Shown: positions 4,369-42,800 of the stretch, one piece after another
Numbering within the stretch: position 1 is the first letter of the stretch
Layout of the letters: every line of letters begins with the position of its first letter
Source: Convolutriloba macropyga
Lineage: Eukaryota
DNA length: 64,000 nt
Direction of reading: 5' to 3'
Assembly (NCBI RefSeq): GCF_964194025.1
Contig: NC_134480.1
Span: 8,866,001 to 8,930,000, forward strand
Made by a program: the position numbers and the translations under genes
The notes under the pieces: model-generated
The model's input: only the letters and a program-made list of their open reading frames with translations
Told to the model about the DNA's origin: nothing
Database searches by the model: none

Positions 4369-4487
4369 CCCGTTTTTTCTTGACTTTTTTCCGAAACGGT
4401 TCTCTAGGCAACTTGAGTTACACCCTCTTTGACGATCTGGTCAACCGTCTGTGATGAGTTAGTTGGCCTCCTCTTTCCCCAGGAGCA

Positions 4488-4727
4488 TGTCGTGCAACAA
4501 TCAAGTCAGAAGTGAAACTCGAAAAAACATTGACTTTGTCCTTATCGCAACCAAAACGAGTTGGTTGTTCCCGCAACTTAAAACTGAAAAAAACTTAACA
4601 AACTTTCTAGAACAATGTAATTGAATCCTTATCTATATTCTCTTACAACGACAAATTCTTACGCTCCGCAGTTTCGCCTCTTGAAACCAAAACTTCAGCA
4701 ATACTGTCACGTGCGGTGCCAGCTACA
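4488..4727 (+). repeat. Putative 3' LTR of the first BEL/Pao element
   Basis: Purine tract AGGAGCA followed by TGT at 4488, 120 nt after the pol stop. Candidate ACA end near 4727. There is no partner LTR in the window to confirm it. Confidence 0.4.
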
Positions 4728-7442: not shown

Positions 7443-7463
7443 GGGGGGGGGGGGGGGGGGGGG
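7443..7463 (+). repeat. Poly-G run (21 nt) closing a purine-rich tract
   Basis: Direct reading of the sequence. Confidence 0.9.
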
Positions 7464-8399
7464 TGCGTTTTCTAGTAGGAGTAAAATGTTTTTGGTCTTT
7501 ATGAAGAGTATACGAATTGATATTCGTGAATGGCGGCTTAGAAAGGCTTTAGAACAATCAATAATTTGCACAATTGTAGCGGAACAATATTTTTCAGTCA
7601 AAACGAAGAGTGAAAAAGAAAACGAAATTCACATCATAAACATGATTTACAAAAATAGGAAAAAGAACAATTGTAAGACTAGATTTAGCTTTGCTATTCG
7701 AGCGGTAAGCTATAAAATTGCGTATTTCATACAAACGTAACTGCAAACAAACAATTCAGAAATAAAAGAGAAACCAAAATAAACAAATCAATGCCATTAA
7801 ACTGGAAGAATATTCTATTACTAAGTAGATAATGCAAATCAATCTTGATTATTATCACTATTTTAATTCATTTTAAATGAAAATTGTAGTAAAACAAACT
7901 TCTGAGCAGATAAAAGATAGAAAAATAGATCAATAACTCCATCTGAAAAGACAATCTAATTAAAAACATCAATGAAGAAACTGAAATCAAAGTCAATTAA
8001 TGAGAAATCTTCCCTCGAATTTTTCGTATGTGTTTGTTTAGCTTAACACTAGCAAATAAACAAGTTTTGAAGTACTTTTTTTTCGAATTTTCAAGATTTG
8101 CAGCCCGCAGATTGCTCAATTTCTAGACTTCATTCATCCAGTTGTCCAGCTTTGAGCTAGACAAATTTTTTTTGGCAAATTAACATTTTTCCACAAACAG
8201 AAATTCCGGTCCCCATTTTCTACATATAAAAGTCGAAGGAAACAGAAGCTTAGACCTCTCATAGGAATGGTTTCCTTTTCCCAATGTAGTATTGTGTAAG
8301 TTAGGTGTAATGAATATATTCACCTCTTATTGGTTACAGGAACCAACAGCTAATGAAAACGTTTTTTTCCTTTGTCCGGGAAAAGGAAACATTGCCCCG

Positions 8400-8584
8400 C
8401 CCGGGTTGACAATTATCATACAAGGGTCTTAGTTACCATACAAGAATAGCTATGATACGTCATATGTTTATTTTTTGCAAGATCTTTGTATGGTTACCAG
8501 ATCATACATAACCCTGTAATCTTATCAAGTCATATATTATGACCTTATAAGATCACCAGAATTCTGTATGATCGCCAACACGGG
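8400..8584. mobile_element. MITE with CCCGGGTTG-type terminal inverted repeats
   Basis: Left end CCCGGGTTGACAATTATCATAC and right end GTATGATCGCCAACACGGG followed by TA. Internal CATACAAG/ATCATA motifs are shared with the element at 46448-47934. Confidence 0.7.
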
Positions 8585-8594
8585 TATACTACGT

Positions 8595-8897
8595 TTATTG
8601 AGAGTTTTGCGAATGTTTCGAAAGCGCGTTGATGAAGTGTGGCAGAAGAGAGACTTTCTCCCTCACGTCCGCAGGCAGACGACTGTTGAAACTGTACTTA
8701 ACCGTTGTTGTCGAGGAGCGATGCGGGTGACCCAGGGACCCCGAGGGCTGGGATGATAGCGATGACGTCATCGAGAAGTGGGAGGAGTTTGGTTCGATGA
8801 CAATTTGAGTGGCGTCGCGGAAGCTCACAATTGTTCCCAGTTGATCGTCTTGCGAGACGTGGCCCAGAAAAGAGCCAGATTCACTGATGACTTCGAT
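8595..8897 (-). CDS. PLK4: PLK4 last coding exon (polo-box 3)
   Basis: Acceptor ttttag ends at 8898, phase 0. Encodes IEVISESGSFLGHVSQDDQLGTIVSFRDATQIVI...KYSFNSRLPADVREKVSLLPHFI, which resembles PLK4 PB3 (G-x-x-x-Q...V-x-F-x-D-G-S-Q-L...LP-x-x-I-K-x-K-L). TAA stop at 8595-8597. Confidence 0.88.
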   Translation of the reverse strand: MEVISESGSFLGHVSQDDQLGTIVSFRDATQIVIEPNSSHFSMTSSLSSQPSGSLGHPHRSSTTTVKYSFNSRLPADVREKVSLLPHFINALSKHSQNSQ

Positions 8898-9572
8898 CTA
8901 AAACCAATTAATGACTCATTCTTTGAAGGATTCGAATTTTATATTAGCTTAAAACGAATAGATGCTATATAAACTTATAATTACAGATCAACGATAACAA
9001 GCGCTCGCTTCGTGAAATCCGCTTTTGTTTCAAATGTCACCCAATGATGTTGCAAATTTAGGTTACTTGACTCTAATTTCACCGAGAAAATCTGGTATTA
9101 ATCGAGAACTGCGTGGTGATTCGAGATAGCCAGAATTTCAAAGTGACTTTAGCAGAGTCACGTAACCTCGATTGAACGCATTTCGCAACTTCAAAAAAGA
9201 TGGCAGTTTTAATATCTGGTACTGTATAGGGAAATCTGGCAATCTAGAGTCTGGAACTGCAGAGATCTGGACTTTAAAACTTGCAGTGCGTGTTTTAACT
9301 TAACATGCGCTGCACGCGCTTCATAAGCTGATATTTATATGCTTTAAGTAAGGGAAAAGCAATGTTTTTCAAAATCAATGTTTGCTTTGAAATGGTATGT
9401 TTCCGTTTTAGCCGTGAAATACTTTATACGGTTTTTGTCTCTTAAGTGATGGGCTGAACGTTTGCTTTAAATTGATTGATTTAAAAGTTCGCTTTGAAAT
9501 TATTGACCTGAACAATAGCTTTTCGCTGTAAATTTTCGCTGTAGCAATAAATTTTCACTGATTAGAACTCAC

Positions 9573-12461
9573 TTCAACTGGTCCTGGATTGACACCTGGG
9601 TTTGATTGGACAACTGATGATGCTGAAGATGCTGCACGTTGAGGAGCAGGATGGGCAGATGATGACCTCTGTTGCTTCTGCTGTTCCTGATGACGATGAA
9701 CTTGACCTCTCTTCTGACCTGATGAATAAATCTGTTGCTGAGGCTGTGGGGGCTGCTTAGCCGGAGTTGCTTGACCAGCGCTGACTAAAGGCGATGATGC
9801 AGCCAGGTGATTTGATTGAATGGGTGACATATTAATACCTATTGTTGATGACAGTCTTTCATTCACAGATTGGCGATCTGTATCACACGTTGTTGACAGG
9901 GAATTATTGGACCCGTTTAGGAACCCATTTTGCCCACCGCGATCGGAACTTCCATTTTTTGAAGTCAAAGAAACTAAGGCTGTTGATGACAAACTTATAG
10001 GGCCGAAACTAGCGGTTGAGAATTCGCCTCCCGTCATTGTAATCTGACTTTGGGCGTTTGAGCTGGGAGTCGAGCTTGGACTAATTGAAGACATTCGTTT
10101 GCCGACTGTTATCGGAAACAGCGATTCGTGATAATCGGTTGATAAAGTTTCCTCTAAATCTTTGATCCCCTTTTCCACTTTCTCGCAATAGCTAAACGCC
10201 TTTGAAGCGTGAACAAACAATTCCTTCACATTTGTATCATGATACGAATAAATTTGCTCCGAATTGTCAAAAACGTGGTTCTCTCCTAAGGAATCGACAA
10301 CTTTGATTCCATCTTTACTTTTCCTAACTTTAGCGTTACTGCTTCTATACACTGCTTCGCAATCGTGGTTCGGGGCGTTGTCCATTAACATAAATTTCCC
10401 CGAACTGTTATACAGGGTTACCTTCGGGGTATTCGATCTGATTATTTGGACGAATCTTGCCGCGTACTGGTACCGCTTCCAGTGTTTGGCTGGCAAATTG
10501 TGGTACGTAAACGCTTTGCTGTTATCACATGCGAGATTGTTTTTATTCGATTTGACCGAAGGTTCAACTAGGCTAATTTTCATGCCATCAGACGAAATGC
10601 TCAGAGCTGTCAAAACTTTCTCTTTTTTCGACGTCGTTTTGGAGAACTCCAACAAAACAGTGCAATCTTCTAAAATTGATATGGTCGCATTTTTTGTAAC
10701 CTGTTTTATAGGTTTTAACCTGCTTGAATCTAAAGGCGGGGTTAGCATACACAACGAAGTTTCGGTTTTGCTTTCTTTGTCTCGATCTCGTGACTTTTGG
10801 CTACTTGATATCGGCGCGGTTGGAGGAAGTCTGGAACAACTACTTTCTGAGAACTGTTCTGAGTTCTGTCGAGAACTACCGCGTGAAAAACTTCGATCAT
10901 TGCCAGATTTTGAGCTCTTTTGACCTCCGTTCACAGCCGAGCTGCGTTTCTTAGAGGGACACTCGACCGAGTTGGTGCGTGATTTGACAACGTTCTCAGA
11001 CTTCTCCGAGACCATGGAATTTTCCATCGAGCGACTGCGATGGTACTGGCGATTACGCAACATATCGTCATCATTTGTGTGAACAATTCCTGAGCCATTA
11101 GATGGATGTTTTGGCGGCAAGTCTTCGGTAGAATTTGAGGTATGTTTTGAGATCATAGGAGCTTCCGGGTAAATTGATGAACTTCTCTGAGACGAATTTT
11201 TGAAATTCGCACTAGAGTCCACGGTTCCGTTTCTGCCCATTGTATAATTCCCGCTATCATTCGACATGTCCTGCGATTTACTCGTAGGTATCGCATTGAC
11301 TGTCATAAGCTGTGATTGCTTCATAAACGGATGATCCAAAATCTCGAACAGTTTCAATCTTTGGGCAGGATTTTTCTTCAAAAGCGAGTGAATCAAATCT
11401 TGAGCATTGGCTGATAAATGATGCGGAATTTCGAACTGGGCATTCACAACTTTTGTCAAGGTAGATTTGATATTTTCAGTATCGAAAGGTGGTCGACCAA
11501 CTAGAAACGTGTAAAGCATGGAACCTAAACTCCAAACGTCAGTTTCAAAACTGTGCGCGTTTCTAGACGCGATTTCAGGTGAAATGAAATTAGGCGTACC
11601 GCACATTGTGAAATGTTGTTGTTTGACATCCGTCATTCTAGTAGCGAGACCGAAGTCCGATATTTTTATATGATCTGAATGGGTTAGTAACAAGTTAGCT
11701 AAGCTCAAATCCCGATGTATAATTCCATGCGAATGAAGGTACACCACGCCTTCTATAACTTCTCGAAACAATTTCTGAGCTTCAAATTCTGTGAAAATTT
11801 TTTGGTTCGCACGCATGTAAGTATACAATTCTCCCTTAGCGCATAGCTCCATAACCATGTACACGTAATGTTTGTCTTCAAAATAGGTGTATAGCTCAAC
11901 AATTGACGGGTGCTTAAGTTGACAATGAATTTCGGCTTCATTCTTCACCCGTCCAGCCATATTTGCAGATTTCATCAACTTTTTATCAATCATTTTGATT
12001 GCAACGTATTGTCCAGTTTTATTCGACAGCGCTCTATAAACGCAAGCAAAGCCGCCTTTACCCAGCAAGTCTAACACCTCATAATTCCCAATTTTCTCAT
12101 CATTGCTTTTGGGTTCCCGACTTCTGTGCTCTTTGGAACTTCCACGCGAGGACGGGCGACCTTGACCGTCAACCGAGGACCCGTTATTCATCGTATGGTT
12201 CTGCTTTGATTGCAGTTCACAGCTCCCGTCGTATTGGGGTTGCATAATGTGAGGTTGTTGGTAATGATTCGGGTTATAGGGTGCAAGTGGTCCGTTAGAA
12301 ACCGGCGGAGGGAATAAGTAATTATTTGTGTTGGTTGAAGTGAATGATGTCTCAATGCTTCCATTGGAATTGCTGTCACTGCTGACGTTACAAGGTCTGT
12401 TCCTTCCAAGGTTATTGTTGTTAGTGTTGCTGTTGTTAGAGACAGCAATAGAGCCTAGCAT
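9573..12461 (-). CDS. PLK4: PLK4/SAK main coding exon (kinase domain, DSG degron, cryptic polo boxes 1-2)
   Basis: Kinase motifs [47 protein letters not shown] degron. Cryptic polo box signatures [51 protein letters not shown]. First ATG at 12461 with an in-frame TGA at 12471-12473. Donor GAA|GTGAGT at 9572, phase 0, joins the exon at 8897. Confidence 0.95.
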
Positions 12462-12899
12462 CACCACATTTCAACAAATGTCACGTCATCTGAGAATCTA
12501 AAAACAGGCAAATTAACTCGATATAACCAAGTCTTGCATGACAGGTAAGATGTGATCATTCGTGCTTAATCGGCCTACTGAGACGGCAATAAGATATTAT
12601 CAATGACAAAGTTGGCACAAAGGGTAGCTAGGTGACGGCAGGGGTACAGCCGATGTCCCGCAAAGAACAAATACCCCTAACCCCTCAAAACAAGGTTACA
12701 GTGCTGATGGAGTGCCCATTCCTGATTGAGTGCCCATTCCTGAAGTGGCCCAGTTCGAAATGCCCTGAAACTGCGTAGACTTGCTAGTGCATGTAATGAG
12801 CGACATCACATAGAAGATTTACCGATACCAGACACGAAGACGACAGTTCATAACGTCCTAAACGCCTTATAATTCGGCACTTAAAAGTTGTCTGATACC

Positions 12900-14330
12900 A
12901 ACAACACAACTAAACTTGACCATAAAGCAAAAGACCTATGCAAAACCAATGCCCACGCAATTGTGCTCAGTACATCAGGTCTTGAAATCAGTATTAATTT
13001 TCCTCAATTCTGTATCGACTCAACACTCGAAGGAAGGAATAAAGAAAGCTGCTGTATTCGAAGACATGCAGATCTATAGACTATCCAAGAACAAGTTGTA
13101 AAGAATGTTGGTAGTGAAGTGTTGGACGTGAGAAAACACTTCTGATGAGAAAATCAATCGCCTGTTCATAATATTCGATTTCAAGAACAAGTTTCCAAAC
13201 ATGTAATAGAACGAAATCCTGAGCAATAAATAGTTTGCAATAATGTCCCGGGAGAGACCAAAGGCGCAACACATCACAGAAAGGTTAGAAATTGTTTCCA
13301 CCAAAACTCGACTACTCTGGAAAAATTTTGGTGGTCACGACTCAAACAGCTTTTATGTGGGAGACTTTTCTCATGGAAGGCAGATAATGCACTCGTCAAG
13401 CATCTTTCTATTCATACCAGGAAAATTCCACAACTGCTTCAACAGAAAGCAGCAGAGCTTTATCTCTGATTCACGTTGACTTTGAGTTGAGATACACAAT
13501 AGAAGAGAAAACAAAATTTTGACAGTAGTTCTAAGCTCATTTTTCAGACAACTACTCATAATTATACTTTTTTCAAAAATATTTAAGACTAGTTTTAATG
13601 AAAACAATAGCGAGCTCGATTTGAACAGATTTCTCAAGATGTCATGAAACAGTGGTAATTCAAAACTGTTCTCCCCAGTCTACTCAAACTCAGATCTACT
13701 GTTCTGGCGAAACCGCCTGCAGCACTTTCTAAAATGAATTCAACATAAGCAAAAAACGATTGCTTGTTGGCCCAGCATCCAACGGACGTTGAAGATATGG
13801 TAGAAAAACTAAGGATTGTTAGTTGAAATGGCATATGCGGGGAAAAACTAAACATCTTATAAATGGGTTCCACGTGGACTGTAGTTGTAAGGCAGAGGTA
13901 AACTTATAGTAATTATTGACGCCAGTTCAGGCTGGATCAAGCTTTGAATACGCTGGTTAGCGTTTCAGAAAAATCTAAAACTCACGTTAGTTAAACGTAC
14001 ACAAGAATTGGAGTACAAAAAGTTTGACGACGGTCTCAAATTTTTAACATTTATTGGTTCAAGAAAGGTTTAGAATCTCGTCAGTGGCAGCATTTTGAAA
14101 AAGTCCTAAGATATTTTCGGAAGTTGTGTTCAAATAGGAAAATTTTTACTTGAAAAGGAAGCTTATTCCTTCCGGAGCAACGACATAGATATACTATATT
14201 GTCGTCTCGTAGCTGCGGTATCTCGTCCAACAAGATCCAGGACGTAATCAGGGCATCCTTCAGACTCATTAACATAACAAGAACAATAAAATTTTGAATA
14301 AAATGCACTGCCTGATTGGCAACCAATAAA
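12900..14330 (-). mobile_element. Highly decayed non-LTR retrotransposon relic, possibly CRE-like
   Basis: Weak RT-like echoes only: LKLVLNIFEKSI (cf. LKLDFxNAFNSI), SLLLCIS (cf. PLLFCL), MLDECII (cf. YLDDG). Boundaries are vague. Confidence 0.25.
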
Positions 14331-27343: not shown

Positions 27344-30125
27344 AGACAAGATAAAGCGCTTCGCGAGACAAACATATTTGCAATTAGAACACCCGCTGGA
27401 ATCGAATTGTCAGTTTTTGTCAAAGAAATGCTCTCTTAGGGGCAAAGCCATCCAGTCAACGACAAATTCAATGAGATTCGTTTTCTGGTGGATCTGGACA
27501 AGCTTAACCGATCCCCGCGCAATTTCCTGTTGAAAACTGTGCAAAATCGAGTCTTCAACCAAGTGGTATCCCAAAAACGTAAGAGAGAACTACAGACCGC
27601 AGCCTGGTCAACGTAACCGAACACCTCAAGGAGAACAAACTTTTAACTGTGCCGTTTGTCAAAAGGAATGGTTTTTTCGTAACGAAGAAAAGCTATGGAC
27701 AAAATCTCCTGGATGTACGTAATTTTTTGCAGTTTAAAGAATGGAACGTGAGGACGATAATATAACTGTTGAAAAAAAATAAAAAAGCACTTTGTCAGGA
27801 AGCAGACTCGAAATTACAGCACTTATTCGACTATATGGTTAAGCAAACACTCTTTAAGAAAAAAAAATAGATAACCCCACTGAAACCGGTTCCGTCGATT
27901 CATTCCTGGGAGTAGACACCACAACCTACACAAATTTCTTACGCTACTTTTATTGAAGTTACCTGGAGTAAACATTGAAACATCCAAAATTGATGCACAA
28001 AGAAATTGAGCGAATTGTGCTTGATGACGACAAAAAACTAGTCTCATTAGATGTAGAAAGTATATACATAAATGTGCCTTTGCCTTTAACGAAGCGATAG
28101 ATATATTCTAAGGTGCCTCTATTCAAGTGACCACGCTCCAGATATATGAAATATCAACAAAAAACTTCTGTAAAAATTGGTTGGGACGAATGTACTTTTC
28201 AAATGCAACAATAAATGTAACTGCAAATTAGACGGCTTAGCAATGGACGAAATTTTGGTGGCCATATTTCCAAACACTTGGACGAAATCGTTCAGAAATA
28301 GAACGATGGAATAGATTTAAAAGAGGATTGTCAATTCAAAACTTTCTTACGAACGTTTTCGAACTCTGAGTTCATCGCCAGGTTATAAACAATACAAAAA
28401 TCTAAAAAGAAAAGCCAGAAAATAAAATGCAAATCAGTAAAATCAACCATTCAAGGAAATTTAAAACGAACTTTTACATATCTACAATCGTATCTACAAA
28501 CCATTTATATCTGAGTAAAAAAAACATTTTTGACTTGATGTAAGAGATGCATATCGACATGTTTTTTGTTAGAAACCTACATATATTGCTTTAAACTTAC
28601 TTTGGTTTTGTTCAAATTTAAAAATGAAATTTTCGTTTCTTAGCGTGTCTTTCAAGTTGGATTTTTTATCTCAAAACTAAGATTTCAGTGTATATTCTCG
28701 TGTTCGGTATTCTTGTTCGACAAGATAAAGCGCTTCGTGAGACAAACAAATTTGCAATTAGAACACCCGATGGAATCGAATTGTCCGTTTTTGTCAAAGA
28801 AATGCTCTCTTAGGGGCAAAGCCATCCAGTCAACGACAAATTCAATGAGATTCGTTTTCTGGTGGATGTGGAGAAGCTTGTCCGATTCCCGCGCAATTTC
28901 CTGTTGAAAACTGTGCAAAACCGAGTCGTCAACCAAGTGGTATGCCAAAAACGTAAGAGAGAACTACAGACCGCAGCCTGGTCAACGTAACCGAACACCT
29001 CAAGGAGAACAAACTTTTAACTGTGCCGTTTGTCAAAAGGCATGGTTTTTTTCGCAACGAAGAAAAGCTATCGACAAAATCTCCTGGATGTACTTCATTC
29101 TTTGCAGTTTAAAGAATGAAACGTGAGGACGATAATATAACTGTTGAAAAAAAATAAAACGCACTTTGTCAGGAAGCAGACTCGAAATAACAGCACAACT
29201 TGCTCCACTATATGGTTAAGCAAACATTCTTTAAGACAAAAAAAGATACCCCACTGAAACCGGTTCCGTCGATTCATTCCTGGGAGTAGACACCACAACC
29301 TACACAAATTTCTTACGCTACTTTTATTGAAGTTACCTTGAGTAAACGTTGAAACATCCAAAATTGGTGCACAAAGAAATTGAGCGCATTGTGCTTGATG
29401 ACGACAAAAAGATAGTCTCGTTAGATGTAGAAAGTATATACATAATTGTGCCTTTGCCTTTATTGAAGTGATAGATATAGTCTAAGTAGCCACTATTCAA
29501 GTGACCACGCTCCAGATATATGAAATATCAACATAAAACTTTTGTTAAAATTGGTTGAGACGAATGTACTTTTCAAATGCAACAATAATTGTAACTGCAA
29601 ATTAGACGGCTTATCAATGGACAAAATTTTGGTGGCCATATTTGCAAACATTTGGATGAAATCGTTAATGAGTAGACCGATGGAATAGGTTTAAAAGAGG
29701 ATTGCCACATCAAAAGTTTCTTACAAACGTTTTCGAACTCTGAGTTCATCGTCAGGTTATAAACAATACAAAATGCTAAAATAAAAAGCCAGAAAATAAA
29801 ATGCCAATCAGTAAAATCAACCATTCAAGAAAATTTAAAACGAAATTTTACATATCTACAATCGTATCTAAAAAACATTTACATCTGAGTAAAAATACAT
29901 TTTCGACTTGATGTAAGAGATGCATATCAACAAGTTTTTTGTTAAAAAACCGACATATATTGCTTTAAACTTACTTTGGTTTTGTTCAATTGTCAAAGTG
30001 AAATTTTCGTTTCTTAACGTGTCTTTCAAGTTGGAAAAATGAAATTTTCGTTTCTTAACGTGTCTTTCAAGTTGGATTTTTATCTCCAAACTTAGCTTTT
30101 AGTGTCAATTCTCGTGTTTGGTATT
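27344..30125. repeat. Tandem duplication (period 1374 bp) of a plus-strand PLE RT fragment fused to a minus-strand pLTR
   Basis: GACAAGATAAAGCGCTTCG at about 27344 and about 28718. Near-identical ORFs 27436-27624 and 28810-28998. PLE RT echoes (LDVESIYxNVP, DGLAM) on the plus strand. Confidence 0.9.
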
Positions 30126-32677
30126 CGTTGCGCGTGTCAATGGCTGGTTTCAATGTTCTTACATAGAGCAACTCTGGTGTCATTAACTTAGATTGTTGGC
30201 TGCATTGGTCTAATATCTTACACTGGAAAGCTGTTTCATCACCGTTGCAATCTTTTGCATGTACTCCCATCGGTGAGTCCACCCTGGCATGCTCTGCTTG
30301 TTGGTAATATGTCGGCATGTCTGCCCTACAGAGATGGATTTGCACCCATTACAAGTGAGTTCATAAACCACGTGGGATTTGAGATCCTCATCAAAGCTAG
30401 ATTTGAGGCAAGGTAAACAGCTCTTAAGTTTCCGAGTGGTGAAAATCGTCTGTACAGAATGAATTTCTTTCAAATTCTTTAAAAATTCATTAGAGATGTT
30501 GCCTCTGTACTGTAATACAAGTTGTTGTTTCTCAGTATTTTCCTGTTGTTTTACGGCTACACCCGCGTTAGATTTATGTCCTTTTCTTTTTTTTTTCATT
30601 CGCAGCTGCTAATTGTATCCTTGATGATTTTCCCTACGCAATGCCTAGGATATTGACTACGTTCCCAAATTTCTTCATTTTTTGTCAATGACTCATGGAA
30701 CGCTTCGCAATTGCTGGTGGCTCGGAACAGGCGGTGTATTGTTCCCTGTATTATGCTTTTCTTATGTTGTAGGGGTGCACAGCTACGATAGTTCAGAATT
30801 GTTCTAGTATCTGATGGTTTTCGATACAATGTGCAAAAAATGTTCCCCTCCGGTTGTACGTTAATTGAAATTTCCAGAAATGGCAAACTGTTTTTATCAT
30901 CTGTTGTTTCTAATGTAAATTGGAGATTTATTGACCGCATCTAACAGCTCTTTTATGTCGCCTCTAACTGTTCTCACAATATCGTCGACATATCTTAGAA
31001 AAACTTTAGTTTCGGACGAATGGTTAATGTCAGTCTGATCATTTTCACGACAGAATGTGCACATCCATAACTGGTTTTCCATGCTATCATATTCTGTGTT
31101 ACTGATTTGCTGACATTTTGCGTGGAACCATCCATTACAAACTTCACACTCAACACCCCGGGAACGTGCTGTCATACGGTGTTCGCAATTGCGACAAGTG
31201 CTAGATTGTGTGGTGGTTTTACATTTAGGTGTCTGTAATTTTAGTTGTAGCTCCCACGATTTCATCCAAAGGTTTGCCAAAATCACCACCAAGGACGCAC
31301 CCATTGCCAAACCGTCTTTCTGACAGTACCAACTTTCATTGCATTTGAAATGGACGTTGGTGACGGCTAATTCAAACAGACGTTTCATTGTTGTTCTAGG
31401 TATGTCTGCTTTATCGTCCCTATTATGAAGCGATCGCAGGGCACTGTTAACAGCTTCCTTTACGGGAACGTTGGTGTATAAACTTTTTACATCCAATGAT
31501 AGGATTTGTTCGTCTTTTTCAAGGTTTATTTGCTCCAGAGTCTTTCGTGCGTCATTGGTGTTAGTTTTTATGTTTGCTCCTTCAATCTTTTGGAAAAAGG
31601 GTGTTAGAAACTTGTTAAGTTTATGGTAACAACTTCCCGGGATAGAGAGAACAGGTCTCAGAGGGGTTTCTTTTTTGTGTACTTTCGGTAATCGATACAA
31701 CCTTGCCGGTTGCGCACCAGTGGACCTTAAAGCTTCGTAAACCATAACCGGTATCTTTCCTTTTTTTCCTCATCTCCAAAAGTTCTTTGTTTAGTTCTTT
31801 TTCGTTTTTCACTACGATATTATTACAACTCTTTTCAAGTTTTGGAACTGTTCGCCATATAAAAACTCTTTCCAGTTTTTCTTCGTACGTGCTCTTTTTG
31901 ATAACACAAAACCCTACCCCTTGTCAAAAGGAACAGCAATCAGGTCGTTGTCAAGCAGATATTTTTGCACTTTTGCTAATGCTCTATCTAAAGGTGTTTC
32001 TCTGATGTTTTTTGAGTACCATTTTGCTGCCGACTCAATTTCGAACAGTTTTTCACCTCGTACATTGTTCTCACACAGATTTCTTATCAAACTGTCTATG
32101 TCCGCCAAGAAATGCAACTCTTCAACCTTGTCCCTTATTGGATGCTTTGGACCAAAAACGAGCAAGTCCCTGACGAGTCCCGGCAAAATGATATTATTTA
32201 GAACCACTACAGTCTTCTCATTAGATGCTCTTAGCGGCTTGTCTTGCCTTTCAGAAAGTTTGGCAACTTTTCCCTGCAGTCTTCGTTCAGAATTAACTAC
32301 ATGTTGCCAACTGCGTTGCGCAAAACGAAAATTACGGAGGGCAATAGGTGGTTATCTAATTTGTTAAGGAGAATTTTTCGACCAGCAGCTTGCTTTTGGT
32401 CACATTTACGATGCGTGTCAGCTGCTGTGGAAATTTCCGACCTTAGTAATTTTAGTTGAAAACTATGCACCATTTGATCCGAAAAAACATCTGTTTCCGG
32501 AACGCAAAATTTCAAAAAATTCGGTATTATATTGGTGGTAAGGCAATTTTTAAGAAAATTTATTCTGCATCTGCTACTTTCATATTTACACACATTGTTT
32601 TCATAGTCCAAGTATGGCTTCCAACAGTCTCTTTTTAGCAAAATTTTTCTCAACAAACATCTTGGCAGTTTAACCAT
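30067..32677 (-). pseudogene. PLE ORF2: RT with in-frame PHD finger, thumb, GIY-YIG endonuclease (frameshifted)
   Basis: LPKVHK..PLRPV, SLDVKSLYTNVP, GLAMGASL, PHD, RYVDD, LPFLEI, YRKPS, VVYELTCNGCKSISVGQTCRHI, ELLYVRTLKPAID. Split over ORFs 32297-32731, 31914-32207, 30897-31745, 30596-30940, 30210-30599 and 30067-30345. Confidence 0.92.
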
Positions 32678-32731
32678 AGTTGAAGGTTTGTAAAAGACCT
32701 CCGGTGAGCGAACACCAAGAGATGCTATCAC

Positions 32732-33329
32732 TTACCACTGAGAATTCGCTTTTTCTTTGCCTCTCGTTGATTTTTGCTAAGTTTCCTTTTCCCCCTGTTC
32801 TTTTTAAGCAGTTTCCGTAGATTAGATTGATATTTCAACACTAACCCCAGTAATTTAAACTCAATGTCGGGGTCCTAATGTAGTTGGAAGTATCTGCTGA
32901 TGATGTTCGTGTTCTTTTGCTTCCGTCCTGACACCAAATGCTTCGTTGACTGGATCACTAAAATTCCTAACAGCTGTTTTAAAATGTTTTTACCGCCATA
33001 CTTTTGACAGCAAACCATCGCCTTGTTTCTATCCGAATGACGTTGTAAAAAGGCAACCAACTTCTCTACATCACACGGCCTGTTGTCATCTGTTCGTTAG
33101 TGAGGGTGATGGAGTTCTTCAAGGCGTCGTACCAAATCACGAAATCACTGCGGTCTTTCAGTTGACCCTTGTGCCAGACCTTTCTTATGTTGTTTTCGGC
33201 GTTTCTGGAGTTTGGGTTGAACGAAAGACCCGGAATGGCGGTCACCGGCGGGAGTAACAATTTTGGATGTTTGCTGTTTTTAGGTTTTAATGCATGGAAA
33301 AATGAACTTGCCGCCAGAATATGCACCAT
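32732..33329 (-). pseudogene. PLE-associated upstream ORF1 (about 198 codons), SGNH-like pattern with basic tail
   Basis: ATG at 33329. ORFs 33066-33329 and 32875-33060 join across a frameshift and continue past an internal TAG to TAA at 32732. Lies between the 5' pLTR and ORF2. Confidence 0.6.
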
Positions 33330-33437
33330 TCTTCAATCTGTAATTGTTCCATGTTGATCTAGCTGAAATGACATAGAAAACTCAACTTGCCCCTTCCTGG
33401 GCTTTGGCTTGTTAAATTGACAGATTTGATCAAGATT

Positions 33438-33803
33438 TGAAAGAGGATTGTCAATTCAAAACTTTCCTAGGAACGTTATCAAACTCTGAGTTCATTGTCA
33501 GGTTATAAACAATACAAAATGCTAAAATGAAAAGCCAGAAAATAAAATGCAAATCACTAAAATCAATCAGTAAAGTAAATTTAAAAGGAATTTTTACAAA
33601 TCTGCAATCGTATCTACAAAACATTTACATCTGAGTAAAAATACATTTTCGACTTGATGTAGCAGATGCAGATCGACATATTTTTTGCTAAAAAAACCTA
33701 CATATATTGCTTTAAACTTACTTTGGTTTTGGTCAATTGTAAAGTTGAAATTTTCGTTTCTTAACATGTCTTTCAAATTGGATTTTTATCCCCAAACTAA
33801 GCT
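33438..33803 (-). repeat. 5' pseudo-LTR of the PLE (other copies at about 28316-28715 and 29692-30100)
   Basis: Shared strings AAGAGGATTG, CTCTGAGTTCAT, CAGGTTATAAACAATACAAAA and GCTTTAAACTTACTTTGGTTTTG occur in all three copies. Confidence 0.88.
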
Positions 33804-33804
33804 G

Positions 33805-36800
33805 TCATCCGATGGAAGAAAGTTGTATTCCTGAACCAGGTGAAGTGCCAGAATATAGGCAACCAAGAAAACAAAACAATGGGGATCTTGTAAGGTTCTG
33901 CAGTCACTGCAACAAATTACCCAAAACTGAACTCACGTTAGTGGGAAGGAATAAGCGTGATGCTACCTCTACAATTCTAAACTTTCGTAGATATGCCGCA
34001 TTGCAACATTAGAAAAAAATTAGTTCAGGGGACTGTGTATAGGTTTTTCTGTTGCACGACAAATTGTAAATGTTTTGAAAAAGCTTAATGCAAATCAAGA
34101 ATGTTTGAAAAATCAGAAACTTGAAATTCGACTGCATATTGTACACAAAACCATGGAAACACTCGTGGTAGGGAAACGAAAAGCCTCAAACACAAAGAAA
34201 AAGAGATAAACAATTGTCAAAAAATAGTTGAGAACAAAACACCACTTATATTTTGCCTTACAGATGCAGTTAAGTGTGATACAGAAAAAAAACCAGAGAA
34301 GTTATCTTAGTTTAAATTTAATTTTTAAACTAAGATAACTTCTCTGGTTTTTGAAACTCGACTGCATATTTTACACAAAACTATGGAAACACTCGTGGTA
34401 GGGAAACAAAAAGCCTCAAACACAAAGAAAAAAAGATAAGCGATTGTCAAAAAATAGTTGAGAACAAAACACCACTTATATTTTGCATTACAGATGCAGT
34501 TAAGTGTGATACAGAAAAAAAACCAGAGAAGTTATCTTAGTTTAAATTTAATATCTGAATAGTAAAATGAAAACATGCTTGCGTTCGCTTAAGTCGAGTT
34601 TCGACAATAACCTGAAATCTCACTTAGTTTATGAATTTCGTATAGTTCATGTGAATCCACCTATGTCGGCGAAACCTGCCGTCACGTTATCACGAGGGTA
34701 ATTGAAAATCAGGGAAATGACTCACCGGTGGGGCAGCACGTTAGCGACTGCTGTGGTTCGTCAAAGTTGTTAAATGGCGAATCATTGAACTCTGCAGCGA
34801 CATTAGAAAATTGATCTCATCGGAAGCATTGTACATAAAGCAACAAAAACCGAAATTGAACACGCGGGACAAACATCGTGGGCGGTAGATGACGCTCAAT
34901 TATTAGTCTGACATGTTAATTGGCTTGTTCAAAAGGTTTTAACGAACACTATATGCAAACAAGCATAAATCACACAACTGTCAACAAACAAAACCTAAAA
35001 TCTCAGAAAAGAATGAAAATAAACGACATTTTTCGAAAATTGAAAATCTAAGATTTCTGAAAGTTCAAAAAAACGATGTAAACAAGTCATCAATTTCCAG
35101 AACCTAAAACTTTAATTTTGTAATGATTGTTGAGATAGTTACATTTTGGTTTAAACAATCTTTGAGTAAAATTGATATCCTGAAAAGGCTAGTTTTGGCA
35201 AAAACGTTCGTTTTAAATTTGGAATTGGACTATCTGTTCTTCAATTTATTTTAAAATCAAATGGGTTATTATTCTCTAAATCGACAAAACAGTGAGCACC
35301 CACTATGAAAGATGACAGCAGCGTTTTTAAATTTCCCACAACCACTTTCTGTATTTTGAACTTAGAGCAATATGCTATACTCTAGGAGCCTTTTGGAACG
35401 ATTGAAATATAACTATGCTGATTGGATGTCTAGCCTTCCTTCCGTGTACAGCACCACATGTATTATCACTCTTAGTTACAAGTTTGATACCTTGTAAGCC
35501 GTTAGAGGGAAGGAACTTTGCTCAATATGTTGATAATATTGTGTTTACCACAAAGTCAAAAGATAAAGATTTGCTCAAAAAATTTAACGCATTGCAGATT
35601 ACAAAAAACTTACAAATTACATTAGAAAGTCAAGCTGATAACGGCGAACTGGCTCCTCTTGATTTGAACATATGTGAAGGCAAGGAAAAATATTTTCATG
35701 CAAATGATACGATAAGCGTGATGCTACCTCTACAATTCTAAACTTTCGTAGATATGCCGCATTGCAACATAAGACAAAAATTAGTACAAGGGACTGTGTA
35801 TAGGTTTTTCCGTTGCACGACAAATTGTAAATGTTTTGACAAAGCACTTAATGCAAATCAAGAATGTTTGAAAAAACAGAAACTTGAAATTCGACTGCAA
35901 ATTGTACACAAAACTATGGAAACACTCGTGGTAGGGAAACAAAAGGCCTCAAACTTAAAGAAAAATGATAAACAATTGTCAAAAAATATTTGAGAACAAA
36001 ACCCCAATATTATTTTGCATTACAGATGCAACTTAAGTGTGATACCGAAAGAAAAACCACAGAAGTTATCTTGGTTTAAATTTAATTTTCTGAATAGTAA
36101 AATGAAAACTTGCTTGCGTTCGCTTAAGTCGAGTTTCGATAAAAACCTGAAATCGCACTTAGTTTATGAAATTTCTTGTAGTTCATGTGAATCCACCTAT
36201 GTCGGCGAAACCTGCCGTCACGTTATCACGAGGGTAACAGAAAATCAGAGAGATGACTCACCGGTGGGGCAGCACAATAGCGACTGCTGTGGTTCGTCAG
36301 GGTTGTTAATTGGCGAATCATTGAACTCTGCAGCGAAATTAGAAAATTGATCTCATTGGAAGCATTGTACATAAAGCAACGAAAACCGGAATTAAACACG
36401 CGCCACAAATATCGTGGGCGGTAGATTACGCTCAATTATTAGTCTGACATGTGAGTTGGCTTGTTCAAAAGTTTTAAACAAACAATATATGCAAAAAAGA
36501 AAAAATCACACAACTGTCAGAAAACAGTCCCTAAAATCTCAGAAAAGAGGGAAAATAAACGACAATTTTCGAAAATTGAAAATCTAAGATATTTGAAAAT
36601 TCAAAAAAACGACGTCAACATGTGGTCAATTTCCAGAACCTAAAAAACTTAATTTTTGTATTGATTGTTGACATAGTTACATTTTGGTTTAAAATAATCT
36701 TAGAGTAAAATTGATATCCTGAAAAGGCTAGTTTTAGCAAAAACATTCGTTTTAAATTTGGAATTGGACTATGTGTTCTTCAATTCATTTTAAAATCAAA

Positions 36801-39800
36801 TGGGTTATCATTCTTTAAATCAACAAAACAGTGAGCATCCACTATGAAAGATGACGGCAATGTTTTTAAATTTTCCGCGACCACTTACTGTATTTTGAAA
36901 TTAGAGCAATATGCTATGCTCTAGGAGCCACGTGGAACGATTGAAATATAACTAAGCTGATTGGATGTCTAGCCTTCCTTCCGTGTACAGCACCACATGT
37001 ATTATCACTCTTAGTTCAAAAAATTGAGCTGCGTTGTAGTACGAAACTCATCCCCCCAAATATATGTTTTTAGCGTATCTTTTGTCTTTTCGTTCATACT
37101 TGATCGTCTGATCTGCTTAAAGAACATTTTATGTATTGTCTTTAATCAAAGTCAGATACTGATTGGGTTTTCAATAGGAGTTAGACTCTAGTCCAGAATA
37201 AGATGAGTCATCATATCGATCGGGCATAGGATCAATTATTTTGACGAATAGTGCACCTACTTACGATCTTATTTTAATAAAATAGAAATCCAATATGGGG
37301 ATATACAATACGCGAAAATAAATCCAAAAACTGGCTAAAATTTTAAAAGTGATCGTTGGGCATCAAAGTAGGGATAAAATGTGCGTATAAAAGTAACGAA
37401 TTTGAAGACTGACCTACTAATTGTGCTACTGCAATTGTCAACTTAATGCAGAAATATAAAAAGCTACAACTAGAAAAATAGATCACAAGTTTTTCATTCC
37501 TTAACATTTATCAACATACACGAGGCTTTTGAAAACTGCTTAAAAATCTGCCGGAACTGCAACATTAGAAAAGAATTAATACAAGGGACTGTGCATAGGT
37601 TTTTCCGTTGCACGACAAATTCGAAATGCTTTGACAAAGCACTTCATACAAATCAGGAATGTTTGAAAAATCAGAAACTTGAAATTCGACTGCAAATTGC
37701 ACACAAATCTAGGGAAACACTCGTTGTAGGGAAACAGAAGGAATCAAACACCAAGAAAAAAGTTACACCATTTTCAAAAAAACGTTGAGATCAAAACCCC
37801 ACTTTTATATTGCATTACAGATGCAACTTAAGTGTGAGACTGAAAGAAAAGCTACAGAAGTTATCTTGGTTTAATTTTAATTTTCTGACAAGTAAAATGA
37901 AAACTTGCTTGCGTTCGCTTATGTCGAGTTTCAACAAAAACCAGAAATCTCACTTAGTTTATGAAATTTCTTGCAGTTCATGTGAATCCACCTATGTCGG
38001 CGAAACTTGCCGTCACGTTATCACGAGGGAAACAGAAAATCAGAGAAATTGATCACAGGTCGGGCAGCACTTTAGCGACTGCTGTGGTTCGTCAAAGTTG
38101 TTAGTTGGCAAATCTTTGAACTCCGCAGTGGCCTTAGAAAACGGATCTCATTGGAAGCATTGTACATAAGGCAACGAAAACGAAATTAAACACGCGCGAC
38201 AAACATCGTGGGCGGTAGATGACGCTCAATTATTAGTCTGACATGTTAATTGGCTTGTTCAAAAGGTTTTAACGAACACTATATGCAAAAAAGCATAAAT
38301 CACACAACTGTCAATAAACAAAACCTAAAATCTCAGAAAAGAATGAAAATAAACGACATTTTTCGAAAATTGAAAATCTAAGATTTCTGAAAGTTCAAAA
38401 AAACGATGTAAGCAAGTGATCAATTTCCAGAACCCAAAATATTTGATTTTAGTAATGATTATTGACATAGTTACATTTTGGTTTAAAACAATCTTAGAGT
38501 AAAATTGATAACCTGAAAAGCCTAGTTTTAGCAAAAACGTTCGTTTTAAATTTGGAACTAGACTATCTGTTCTTCAATTTATTTTAAAATCAAGTGGGTT
38601 ATCATCCTCTAAATCGACAACACAGTGAGCCCCACTATGAAAGATGACAGCAGCGTTTTTAAATTTCCCGCAACCACTTATTGTATTTTGAACTTAGAGC
38701 AATATGCTATACTCTAGGAGCCACGTGGAACGATTGAAATATAACTAAGCTGATAGGATGTCTAGCCTTCCTCCCGTGTACAGCACACCATATATTATCA
38801 CATTTAGTTCAAAAAATTGAGCTGCGTTGTAGTAGGAAACTCATCTCCCCAAATATATGTTTTAGCCTATCTTTTGTCTTTCCGTTCATACTTGCTTGTC
38901 TGATCTGCTTAAAGAACATTTCATGGATTGTTTTTAATCAAAGTCAGATACTGATTGGGTTGTCAATACGAGTTAGACTCCAGTCTAGAATAATTCGAGT
39001 CATCATATTGATCGGGCATAGGATCAATGATTTTGACGAATAGTGCACCTACTTAAGATCTTATTTTATTAAAATAGAAATCATAAGGGATATACAATAC
39101 GCGAAAATAAATCCAAACATTAGCTCAGATGTTAAAAGTGATCGTTGGGTTTCAAAGTAGGGGTAAAAGATACGTATAAAAGTAAAGAACTTGAAGACTG
39201 ACCTACTAAGTGTGCTACTGCAATTGTCAACTTAATACAGAAATATGAAAAGCTACAAATAGAAAAATAGATCACAAGTTTTTCATTCATTAACATTTAT
39301 CAACATACACGAGGCTTTTGAAACTGTCTAAAAATCTGCCGGATCTGCAACATTAGAAAAGAACTAATACAAGGGACTGTGCATAGGTTTTTCCTTTGCA
39401 CGACAAATTCGAAATGCTTTGACAAAGCACTTCATACAAATCAGGAATGTTTGAAAAATCAGAAACTTGAAATTCGACTGCAAATTGTACACAAATCTAT
39501 GGAAGCACTCGTTGTAGGGAAACAGAAAGTCTCAAACCCCAAGAAAAAAGTTACATCATTGTCAAAAAAACGTTGAGAACAGAACCCCACTTTTATATTG
39601 CATTACAGATGCAACTTAAGTGTGAGACTGAAAGAAAAACTACAGAAGTTTACTTGGTTTAAACTTAATTTTCTGACTAGTAAAATGAAAACTTGCTTGC
39701 GTTCGTTTAAGTCGAGTTTGGATAAAAACCTGAAATGGCACTTAGTTTATGAAATTTCTTGTAGTTCAAGTGAACCCACTTATGTCGGCGAAAATTGCCG

Positions 39801-42800
39801 TCACGTTATCACGAGGGTAACAGAAAATCAGAGAAATGATTCACCGGTCGGGCAGCACGTTAGCGACTGCTGTGGGTCGTCAAAGTTGTTGTTTGGCGAA
39901 TCATTGAAGTCTGCAGCGACATTAGAAAATTGATCGCATTGGAAGCATTGTACATAAGGCAACGAAAACCGAAATTAAACACGCGCGACAAATATCGTGG
40001 GCGGTAGATGACGCTCAATTATTAGTCTGACATGTGAGTTGGCTTGTTCAAAAGTTTTTAACAAACAATATATGCAAAAAAAAGTCACACAACTGTCAGA
40101 AATTAAAACCTAAAATCTCAGAAAAGAAGGCAAATAAACGACAATTTTCGAAAATTGAAAATCTAAGATTTTTTGGAAGTTCAAAAAACTATGTAAACAA
40201 GTGATCAATTTCCAGAACCCATAATATTTAATTTTTGTAGTGGTTGTTGACATAGTTACATCTTGTTTTAAAACAATCTTAGAGTAAAATTGATAACCTG
40301 AAAAGGCTAGTTTTAGCAAAAACGTTCGTTTTAAATTTGGAATTGGACAATCTGTTCTTCAATTTATTTTAAAATCAAATGGGTTATCATCCTCTAAATC
40401 GACAAAACAGTGAGCCCCACTATGAAAGATGACACCAGCTTTTTTAAATTTCCCGCAACCACTTATTGTATTTTGAACTTAGAGCAATATGCTATACTCT
40501 AGGAGCCACGTGGAACGATTGAAATATAACTAAGCTGATTGGATGTCTAGCATTCCTTCCGTGTACAGCACCACATGTATTATCACTCTTAGTTCAAAAA
40601 ATTGAGCTGTGTTGTAGTACCAAACTCATCTCCCCAAATATATGTTTTAGCGTATCTTTTGTCTTTTTGTTCAAACTTGATTGTCTGATCTGCTTAAAGA
40701 ACATTTCATGGATTGTCTTTAATCAAAGTCAGATACTGATTGGGTGTTCAATACGAGTTAGACTCCAGTCCAGGATAAGGTGAGTCATCATATTGATCGG
40801 GCATAGGATCAATGATTTTGACGAATAGTGCACCTACTTAAGATCTTATTTTATTAAAATAGAAATCATAAGGGATATACAATACGCGAAAATAAATCCA
40901 AACATTAGCTCAGATGTTAAAAGTGATCGTTGGGTTTCAAAGTAGGGGTAAAAGATACGTATAAAAGTAAAGAACTTGAAGACTGACCTACTAAGTGTGC
41001 TACTGCAATTGTCAACTTAATACAGAAATATGAAAAGCTACAAATAGAAAAATAGATCACAAGTTTTTCATTCATTAACATTTATCAACATACACGAGGC
41101 TTTTGAAACTGTCTAAAAATCTGCCGGATCTGCAACATTAGAAAAGAACTAATACAAGGGACTGTGCATAGGTTTTTCCTTTGCACGACAAATTCGAAAT
41201 GCTTTGACAAAGCACTTCATACAAATCAGGAATGTTTGAAAAATCAGAAACTTGAAATTCGACTGCAAATTGTACACAAATCTATGGAAGCACTCGTTGT
41301 AGGGAAACAGAAAGTCTCAAACCCCAAGAAAAAAGTTACATCATTGTCAAAAAAACGTTGAGAACAGAACCCCACTTTTATATTGCATTACAGATGCAAC
41401 TTAAGTGTGAGACTGAAAGAAAAACTACAGAAGTTTACTTGGTTTAAACTTAATTTTCTGACTAGTGAAATGAAAACTTGCTTGCGTTCGTTTAAGTCGA
41501 GTTTGGATAAAAAACTGAAATGGCACTTAGTTTATGAAATTTCTTGTAGTTCAACTGAACCCACTTATGTCGGCGAAAATTGCCGTCACGTTATCACGAG
41601 GGTAACAGAAAATCAGAGAAATGATTCACCGGTCGGGCAGCACGTTAGCGACTGCTGTGGGTCGTCAAAGTTGTTGTTTGGCGAATCATTGAAGTCTGCA
41701 GCGACATTAGAAAATTGATCGCATTGGAAGCATTGTACATAAGGCAACGAAAACCGAAATTAAACACGCGCGACAAATATCGTGGGCGGTAGATGACGCT
41801 CAATTATTAGTCTGACATGTGAGTTGGCTTGTTCAAAAGTTTTTAACAAACAATATATGCAAAAAAAAGTCACACAACTGTCAGAAATTAAAACCTAAAA
41901 TCTCAGAAAAGAAGGCAAATAAACGACAATTTTCGAAAATTGAAAATCTAAGATTTTTTGGAAGTTCAAAAAACTATGTAAACAAGTGATCAATTTCCAG
42001 AACCCATAATATTTAATTTTTGTAGTGGTTGTTGACATAGTTACATCTTGTTTTAAAACAATCTTAGAGTAAAATTGATAACCTGAAAAGGCTAGTTTTA
42101 GCAAAAACGTTCGTTTTAAATTTGGAATTGGACAATCTGTTCTTCAATTTATTTTAAAATCAAATGGGTTATCATCCTCTAAATCGACAAAACAGTGAGC
42201 CCCACTATGAAAGATGACACCAGCTTTTTTAAATTTCCCGCAACCACTTATTGTATTTTGAACTTAGAGCAATATGCTATACTCTAGGAGCCACGTGGAA
42301 CGATTGAAATATAACTAAGCTGATTGGATGTCTAGCATTCCTTCCGTGTACAGCACCACATGTATTATCACTCTTAGTTCAAAAAATTGAGTTGCGTTGT
42401 AGTACCAAACTCATCTCCCCAAATATATGTTTTAGCGTATCTTTTGTCTTTTTGTTCAAACTTGATTGTCTGATCTGCTTAAAGAACATTTCATGGATTG
42501 TCTTTAATCAAAGTCAGATACTGATTGGGTGTTCAATACGAGTTAGACTCCAGTCCAGGATAAGGTGAGTCATCATATTGATCGGGCATAGGATCAATGA
42601 TTTTGACGAATAGTGCACCTACTTAAGATCTTTTTTTAATAAAATAGAAATCATAAGGGATATACAATACGCGAAAATAAATCCAAACATTGGCTCAGAT
42701 TTTAAAAGTGATCGTTGGGTTTCAAAGTAAGGGTAAAAGGTACGTATAAAAGTAACGAACTTGAAGACTGACCTACTATGTGTGCTACTGCAATTGTCAA

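Follow-up and report, generated by a model that had tools for sequence, protein, structure and literature searches.

Positions 32,732 to 33,329 of the window, a 64,000-nucleotide (nt) stretch from Convolutriloba macropyga (assembly GCF_964194025.1, contig NC_134480.1, positions 8,866,001 to 8,930,000 of the forward strand), lie in the wreck of a Penelope-like element (PLE) and carry, on the minus strand at 33329-32728, an ATG-started open reading frame (ORF) that we term ORF1. ORF1 belongs to the element as a genuine gene and is under purifying selection; the copy in the window is a dead member of a recently active, two-gene PLE lineage. We consider it likely that the stretch is the decayed first gene of such an element, specifying a divergent SGNH-hydrolase fold with a basic tail, with ORF2 started separately and with a lipid- or ribonucleoprotein (RNP)-related role for the product.

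A search of the 1.18-Gb genome retrieved at least 40 copies of the 598-nt stretch at 81 to 91% identity. Among 30 fetched copies, three (L005, L007, and L010) have an uninterrupted ORF1 of 202 codons, and in L005 and L007 it is followed by an intact ORF2. The 10-kb stretch around L005 (L066) contains a 3,729-bp unit that is inserted into a long interspersed nuclear element (LINE) and has 300-nt direct repeats, or pseudo-long terminal repeats (pLTRs), that are 100% identical. In this unit, ORF1 occupies positions 2404-3012 and ORF2 extends from an ATG at 3063 to 5666 (867 amino acids [aa]). Pfam recognizes RVT_1 and GIY-YIG in the intact ORF2, with PHD just below its cutoff. ORF1 is followed by the ORF2 N terminus at a constant spacing of ~55 nt in 29/30 copies. 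When the best 40 scored matches were considered for both ORF1 and the ORF2 5' end, an ORF1 match was located directly upstream of 23 of the ORF2 5' ends, a count that is a lower bound.

Selection was estimated by the Nei-Gojobori method for all pairs among the 30 ORF1 copies. The pooled ratio of nonsynonymous to synonymous differences (pN/pS) was 0.52 (median, 0.48) in the true frame, compared with 0.79 and 0.98 in the two shifted frames, and the intact copies L005 and L010 gave an omega of 0.32. The p-distance of ORF1 (0.12) is about half that of the adjacent 5' untranslated region (0.23). The N terminus of ORF2 has a pN/pS of 0.61 to 0.68. Because copies decay neutrally after insertion, the ORF1 ratios understate the constraint on active lineages.

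Stand-alone genes of ~200 codons that take the 5'-most position in several classes of retroelement make up a large family, of which ORF1 is a member. A word-indexed search of public data found 62 proteins of ~200 aa with 35 to 50% identity to ORF1, and an exhaustive HMMER search found 586 representatives (50%-identity clusters) at E ≤ 0.001, of which 271 scored E ≤ 1e-10. Two of the relatives, from other assemblies, are themselves linked to PLEs. In L032, a PLE ORF2 that shares the N-terminal domain, the PHD insertion in the reverse transcriptase (RT), and GIY-YIG begins 46 nt downstream of an ORF1 with 45% identity; in L072, 34 nt separate an ORF1 with 48% identity from the PLE-like N-terminal and RT ORFs downstream of it. 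A maximum-likelihood tree of 55 family members places the three PLE-linked ORF1s in a single clade (support, 86/85). This two-gene PLE lineage is conserved in at least three assemblies and was recently active in the C. macropyga genome.

A chance open frame, or a fragment of a host gene beside one PLE insertion, might have given a similar picture at a single locus. The window copy of ORF1 is itself broken, and canonical endonuclease-bearing PLEs are described as single-ORF (PMC8557442), both of which would suit such an explanation. However, at least 40 genomic copies, three uninterrupted 202-codon frames, and a family of 586 clusters are far beyond chance. The position of ORF1 within the pLTR-bounded unit, its linkage to ORF2 in 29/30 copies, and purifying selection refute this explanation, as does the same PLE association in other assemblies; it is almost certainly wrong. 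The first-pass annotation of the window had left it to be settled whether the frame is tied to other PLE copies and whether it shows coding constraint. Both are answered in the affirmative, the first by the 29/30 linkage inside a pLTR-bounded unit and the recurrence of the arrangement in two other assemblies, the second by ratios of 0.48 to 0.52 in frame against 0.79 to 0.98 out of frame.

The intact ORF1 protein was modeled with AlphaFold2 from a 34-sequence alignment (mean pLDDT, 86; pTM, 0.81). In the model, strands and helices alternate over residues 1-175, and the C-terminal helix is of lower confidence. Foldseek placed GDSL/SGNH hydrolases at the top of its PDB matches (probability, 0.9 to 1.0; E value, 4e-3 to 5e-2; TM score, 0.37 to 0.51), and its searches of the AFDB clusters and the ESM Atlas also gave an SGNH assignment. 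When the Foldseek candidates were realigned with VIA-align, Z scores of 8 to 10 were obtained over 145 to 161 residues. In an exhaustive VIA search of 48,161 representative PDB chains, SGNH-fold proteins made up 49 of the best 50 rows, led by the C-terminal domain of OatA (6vjp; Z score, 10.9; root-mean-square deviation, 3.0 Å; 138 residues over model positions 1-174). The sole non-SGNH entry was a response-regulator receiver domain at rank 35 (Z score, 7.3). The VIA alignment runs from 1 to 175 of the model against 3 to 179 of Escherichia coli TAP, and the OSK domain of Oskar (5a4a) matches with a Z score of 7.5. Residues 1-175 are accordingly modeled as a very divergent SGNH-hydrolase (flavodoxin-like) fold, in agreement with the α/β/α layout of five parallel strands that characterizes the SGNH/GDSL superfamily. 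An SGNH-like fold had been called from the letters of the window, with AlphaFold and Foldseek named as the check, and the model indeed matches SGNH/GDSL hydrolases almost exclusively.

Conservation was counted among 83 diverse relatives in the numbering of the intact 202-aa ORF1. Block I (G/A-A-S-S-L) comprises position 6 (Gly in 52 and Ala in 23 of 83), Ala7 (77/83), Ser8 (77/83), and Leu10 (72/83), and block II is marked by Gly34 (76/83). Block III (W-H-D-x-I-N-N-S) comprises Trp66 (80/83), His67 (79/83), Asp68 (75/83), Asn71 (68/83), and Asn72 (77/83), while block V (L-H-P/Q) contains His153 (80/83) and Pro154 (41/83). Ser8 lies at the β1/α1 junction of the model, where the SGNH nucleophile sits, and either Asn71 or Asn72 is the candidate oxyanion-hole residue. 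We take Ser8, Gly34, the Asn, and His153 to correspond to S10, G44, N73, and H157 of E. coli TAP. The first-pass annotation had assigned ILAAS, PG, VIWYDxxxN, and LH to SGNH blocks I, II, III, and V; this assignment was right, because the conserved columns are these very blocks and the motifs it quoted fall in them. The protein is strongly basic, with an isoelectric point (pI) of 10.8 overall and 10.3 for the SGNH domain. Residues 173-202 form a Lys/Arg-rich tail, and the last 30 residues hold 15 Lys or Arg.

Several points weigh against the interpretation of ORF1 as an SGNH-type gene of a two-ORF transcript. The fold rests on prediction, and Z scores of 8 to 11 are solid rather than overwhelming. 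Pfam has no family for the intact ORF1 protein, the window pieces, or the 83 relatives, and its SGNH families (Lipase_GDSL/_2 and others) matched none of the 83 members at E ≤ 0.1; sub-threshold noise, such as KaiA_N and TPR_ZFYVE26, was not accepted. PDB HMM searches with the single sequence and with 34- and 83-sequence profiles gave no relevant match. The LINE esterase structure 4c1b is not among the 50 listed structural matches, although it was crystallized in an open, domain-swapped form that may depress its scores. The Asp of the GDS motif is replaced by Ala (position 7, 77/83), and no acid is conserved three residues ahead of the His (DxxH), position 150 being K, R, Q, or S among the relatives. 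The SGNH domain begins at residue 1 and lacks the N-terminal coiled coil that LINE esterases generally have ahead of them. Lastly, a look for RNA evidence of a transcript came up empty among the runs on record.

Some of these negatives would fit a generic flavodoxin- or Rossmann-like α/β domain that is unrelated to SGNH hydrolases and shows the S/G/N/H pattern by coincidence. Sequence methods detect no SGNH kinship, the Foldseek E values and TM scores are modest, and other folds do appear, namely, the receiver domain at a Z score of 7.3 and weak ESM Atlas feature rows for a DTW domain (score, 0.83), which are below the useful range. We nevertheless regard a generic domain as improbable. SGNH-fold proteins account for 49/50 of the best matches from 48,161 chains, with the whole domain covered (138 to 162 aligned residues), and the four conserved positions agree with blocks I, II, III, and V in order, spacing, and secondary-structure context. 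Both the His-Pro of block V and a His four residues ahead of the Asn are present.

Given the SGNH-like fold, a separate issue is whether the protein acts as an enzyme. Since the GDS Asp is Ala and no acid occupies the position three residues before the His, the classical Ser-His-Asp triad is absent, and a non-catalytic, OSK-like protein is possible. ORF1 would then encode an SGNH-fold scaffold of the RNP that binds RNA or lipid, similar to OSK and the insect PAF-AH homologs, with the Ser and His serving in binding or folding. The structural match to OSK and the very basic protein with its arginine/lysine tail favor this alternative, and even the active ZfL2-1 esterase turns over slowly and binds liposomes independently of its active site (PMC3905857). 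Against it, the S, G, N (Asn71 or Asn72), and H positions are each retained in 82 to 96% of the 83 relatives. SGNH enzymes that have a Ser-His dyad without the acid do exist, for example, the Streptomyces scabies esterase. The Drosophila Oskar OSK domain resembles ORF1 in its SGNH fold, RNP context, and basic surface; it differs in that OSK, like the insect PAF-AH homologs, is described as a non-catalytic SGNH protein (PMC3905857), whereas the ORF1 family retains all four SGNH-defining positions. We treat the non-catalytic scaffold as a possibility toward which we lean less than halfway, and real catalysis by the ORF1 protein is likewise put forward tentatively, as something that may well occur but that we would stop short of calling probable.

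Retroelement-borne esterases have been reported before. For the esterase domain of LINE ORF1p, PMC8557442 cites Kapitonov and Jurka (2003). Schneider et al. (2013; PMC3905857; structure 4c1b) described the transposon esterase domain in CR1/L2 and RTEX LINEs and noted it "even in Penelope-like elements," by way of the Repbase entry Neptune1_Ren from a sponge. In their study, the zebrafish ZfL2-1 ORF1p esterase has the catalytic residues S143, G165, N195, D279, and H282, a pI of 10.8, and weak esterase activity; it binds acidic liposomes, and an arginine-rich peptide is implicated in RNA binding (PMC3905857). ORF1 is comparable in being a retroelement-encoded SGNH fold whose ORF lies upstream of the RT gene, in a gag-like position, in retaining the S, G, N, and H positions, in having nearly the same pI, and in having a separate arginine/lysine-rich peptide. 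Conservation limited to transposon-encoded esterases is reported for two positions: H191, which precedes N195 by four residues, and S228 in strand 4, which is hydrogen bonded to H191 (PMC3905857). ORF1 His67 stands four residues before Asn71, a match at the level of the motif. In the ORF1 family, strand 4 reads A-I-V-Y-C (Tyr107 in 77/83 and Cys108 in 54/83), with no conserved Ser in the putative S228 region.

In contrast to the LINE esterases, the ORF1 family has no detectable sequence similarity to them, carries GAS in place of GDS, and lacks the Asp three residues before the His. Its basic peptide is C-terminal rather than N-terminal, and it is a stand-alone protein of 200 residues that, in the LINE L071, lies upstream of a separate RRM+CCHC ORF1. 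According to Schneider et al., an esterase and an RRM never occur within one ORF1p (PMC3905857). A second precedent is that of Rodriguez et al. (2017), who in bdelloid rotifers found that Vesta LTR elements and Athena PLEs contain GDSL ORFs and suggested that retroelement types share genes (PMC5408684). There too, SGNH-type accessory genes are common to LTR retrotransposons and PLEs, and some (Athena-L) are without the catalytic residues. The rotifer genes differ in being ORF3, downstream in the env position, in Vesta, or parts of giant, endonuclease-deficient, telomeric Terminons, and they are recognized by HHpred; here, the gene is the 5' ORF of a compact 3.7-kb endonuclease-bearing PLE and also of BEL/Pao and LINE elements, in assemblies of marine-type animals.

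Because Neptune1_Ren, Vesta, and Athena have been reported, neither an SGNH accessory gene in a PLE nor the sharing of SGNH genes across classes is unprecedented. The bicistronic PLE with a LINE-like accessory ORF that had been suggested for the window is supported in its gene layout by the two ORFs of the intact copies and in its fold by the SGNH model, although an esterase ORF1 in a PLE is not in itself new (PMC3905857). What differs here is a Pfam-invisible family that has GAS for GDS and neither a triad acid nor a coiled coil. Its gene stands alone at the 5' side of a compact, endonuclease-bearing PLE whose RT contains a PHD, and the family also occurs in BEL/Pao and LINE elements, in one case upstream of an ORF1 with RRM and CCHC. 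A limited literature search of titles and abstracts found no earlier description of the BEL/Pao association.

ORF1 closes with two consecutive stops, and the first ATG of ORF2 lies ~50 nt downstream in another frame. We propose that a single RNA driven by the pLTR would carry ORF1 and ORF2 and that ORF2 would be started separately, probably by reinitiation or internal entry ~50 nt past the ORF1 stop, as proposed for LINEs, with no frameshifting. By analogy with the ZfL2-1 esterase ORF1p, the basic SGNH domain (pI, 10.3) may bring the RNP of the element to membranes or lipids of negative charge and might also act as a weak Ser-His esterase, while the basic tail might bind RNA or serve as a nuclear localization signal. 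Four sequencing runs contained the sequence, none of them on record as RNA; their short contigs resemble genomic DNA in behavior, with greater depth toward the 3' end as the only trend and without informative joints.

Programmed ribosomal frameshifting or readthrough could instead join ORF1 to ORF2 as an ORF1-RT fusion. The reading frame of ORF2, -1 relative to ORF1, becomes open right at the ORF1 stop, and a hairpin is predicted just past that stop in the intact copy of this genome (-24.2 kcal/mol; z score, -2.7). Furthermore, in PMC8557442 (Fig. 1 legend), a frameshift and a pseudoknot set ORF1 apart in the drawings of some PLE types. However, the two frames overlap by only ~4 nt, which is too short for a slippery heptamer, and a double stop closes ORF1. 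The offset of ORF2 relative to ORF1 also varies by lineage, being -1 here and +1 in L032 and L072, in which the inter-ORF hairpin is nonsignificant (z scores, -0.1 and -0.9). Programmed frameshifting is rejected on account of the short overlap, the double stop, and the lineage-specific offsets, and a fusion of this kind is very improbable; separate initiation of ORF2 remains our preferred account.

The ORF1 family is not confined to PLEs. A profile search with the family alignment gave 4,110 first-look candidates in this genome. Among the 150 of these that were scored, nearly all are intact ORFs of ~199 to 212 codons from another subfamily, which has 42% identity to the PLE ORF1. One of them was reconstructed over 20 kb (G000:C8:19080000-19099999; L065 and L068, joined positions 2418-13340) and is part of a complete, very young BEL/Pao LTR retrotransposon. 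Its 447-bp LTRs (2418-2864 and 12894-13340) are 100% identical, an intact SGNH-like ORF of 212 codons (4165-4803) lies between the 5' LTR and gag, and gag-pol begins at 6053. Pfam identified DUF1759, Peptidase_A17 (Pao), and DUF5641, with Integrase_H2C2 just below the cutoff. A block of tandem repeats occupies ~5491-5843, downstream of the SGNH-like ORF.

In other assemblies, SGNH-like homologs were found upstream of BEL/Pao gag-pol (L031 and L033) and upstream of a LINE ORF with AP endonuclease and RT (L034). Another LINE (L071:690-3336) has three successive ORFs, namely, the SGNH-like ORF, an ORF1 with RRM and CCHC zinc knuckle, and an AP endonuclease ORF. In L069:5001-7663, 200 nt lie between the SGNH-like ORF and a downstream ORF of 621 aa that has a SET domain and a DUF1258-like region. 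The BEL/Pao-linked sequences are split among three clades of the 55-member tree, the backbone of which is unresolved. Gene sharing between retroelement classes is therefore shown by the elements themselves, and the tree sets neither the number nor the direction of transfers. The first-pass annotation had hinted at module exchange between PLEs and LINEs, which the data support more broadly than was suggested, since the same ORF family also heads BEL/Pao and LINE elements.

Two further observations were made in these searches. Upstream of the BEL/Pao element in L031 (positions 30-3981) are a C2H2 zinc-finger ORF and then ORFs that resemble family-B DNA polymerase by eye; they look like a Polinton/Maverick-like or other DNA element and are candidates on that visual basis. 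Separately, a search with PF13472 turned up, at many sites in the genome (e.g., C7:30626107-30626466, C10:26880504-26880890, and C5:22452235-22452612), several multicopy ORF families with lengths of 177, 205, and 228 codons that score above the cutoff of Pfam Lipase_GDSL_2. They are probably canonical esterases carried by transposons and differ from the Pfam-invisible ORF1 family.

Taken together, the distribution of the family invites a wider proposal, which we offer with some reserve and hold to be somewhat less than an even bet: that the Pfam-invisible SGNH-like gene is a portable 5' accessory cassette that has moved laterally between PLE, LINE, and BEL/Pao elements in marine invertebrates, acting as a Ser-His esterase or a lipid-binding factor that aids RNP trafficking. 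If so, this PLE lineage would be obligatorily two-gene, with the esterase and PHD modules that were first described together in CR1-like LINEs. Independently of the cassette proposal, PLEs can take on a LINE-like two-gene layout, as a selected gene in the gag position is found in a lineage of normally single-ORF elements. The 586-cluster family escapes standard domain searches, and annotation pipelines for transposable elements therefore leave the gene as an "unknown ORF." Its SGNH-like features tie it to the sole retrotransposon esterase that has been studied experimentally, with membrane or lipid targeting of the RNP as the candidate function. That PLE, BEL/Pao, and LINE elements have the gene at their 5' end makes a clean natural case of gene sharing across different replication mechanisms, and a function independent of the mode of integration is therefore implied.

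The remainder of the element has the hallmarks of a PLE. Intact ORF2 encodes a PLE-type RT and, at its C terminus, GIY-YIG by Pfam, and the pLTRs arise from partial tandem insertion, with the 300-nt repeats lying 3,729 nt apart; the window copy has them as well. In common with canonical endonuclease-bearing PLEs (Penelope/Poseidon, Neptune, and Nematis; PMC8557442), it has pLTRs, PLE N-terminal motifs in its RT, GIY-YIG at the C terminus, 5'-truncated copies, and partial-tandem insertion. It differs from them in having two ORFs in its intact copies rather than one, a PHD finger within the RT, and no Rfam-detectable hammerhead. Craig et al. (2021) mention an ORF1 for PLEs only as optional in the legend of their Fig. 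1, describe an upstream zinc-knuckle ORF in one Chlamys type, and report PHD inserts only in the Chlamys elements of Chlamydomonas (PMC8557442). Here, the PHD finger lies between QKDGLAMG and YVDD of the RT (window 30981-31315, minus strand; L066:4545-4695) and is present also in L032. A regular-expression search located a hammerhead-type core (CUGACGA, a GAACUC/GAGUUC stem, and GAAA) in the intact pLTR at L066:2220-2260, and the window pLTR has a decayed, mutated CUGAnGA-stem-GAAA hammerhead-like core at ~33470-33500 (minus strand). Rfam gave no hammerhead ribozyme match at E ≤ 1 in either the window or the intact copy.

Finally, the window copy was delimited by blastn with the intact unit (L066:1923-5951; unit positions 5-4029). 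The degenerate element occupies 29766-33807 on the minus strand at 89% identity and retains pLTRs at both ends. The 5' pLTR spans 33430-33807 (inner end approximate), in accordance with the recurrence of unit positions 1-378 at 3709-4029, and the 3' pLTR spans 29766-30085 (start approximate; placed by blastn and the intact-copy repeat) and overlaps the end of ORF2. The ORF1 remnant, with its SGNH-like domain and basic tail, occupies 32728-33329, its TGA being at 32728-32730, and has 90% nucleotide identity to the intact 202-codon copies. Three-frame translation of 33340-32700 shows a first frame (frame C) that starts at the ATG at 33329 (MVHILAASS...) and runs for 87 codons to a premature stop at 33066. 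A second frame (frame B) resumes with ..VAFLQRH..RYFQLH and reaches a TAG at 32875-32877. Past this TAG, frame B reads DPDIEFK...KKKRILSGK (REAKKKRILSGK) and closes at a TGA-TAG double stop (32730-32725).

Pairwise alignment with the intact ORF1 revealed three breaks: a 1-nt deletion at codon 75 that shifts the frame (approximately 33104-33108), a 6-nt in-frame deletion at codons 121-123, and the TAG at codon 154, directly after the conserved His of block V. The ATG start, the one shift, and the one stop noted in the first-pass annotation were all reproduced by translation, while the 6-nt deletion had been overlooked. The distance of 55 nt that it gave from the end of the ORF to the ORF2 ATG needs correction. 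The first ORF2 ATG (MVKLPRC...) is at 32677, and the untranslated gap is ~50 nt, or 53 nt when counted from the last sense codon. By alignment, the spacer (32678-32727) begins with the second in-frame stop, with ORF2 in the -1 frame relative to ORF1. The window ORF2, a PLE RT at 30067-32677, is itself broken into several frames; translation, together with Pfam on the intact homolog, places in it the N-terminal PLE domain, the RT with its PHD insert, and the C-terminal GIY-YIG (~30210-30420).

The surroundings of the element hold further PLE material. An extra solitary pLTR, 86 to 88% identical to that of the unit, lies at 28313-28712 (minus strand), ~1 kb past the 3' end of the element, and fits the partial-tandem manner in which PLEs typically insert. 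On the opposite strand, 3' fragments from another, diverged PLE family recur over window positions 34000-40000 in a tandem array that adjoins the element; the family's GIY-YIG motif (LVYEISCSSCESTYVGETCRH) recurs at ~36015-36350, 37810-38052, and 39598-39933.

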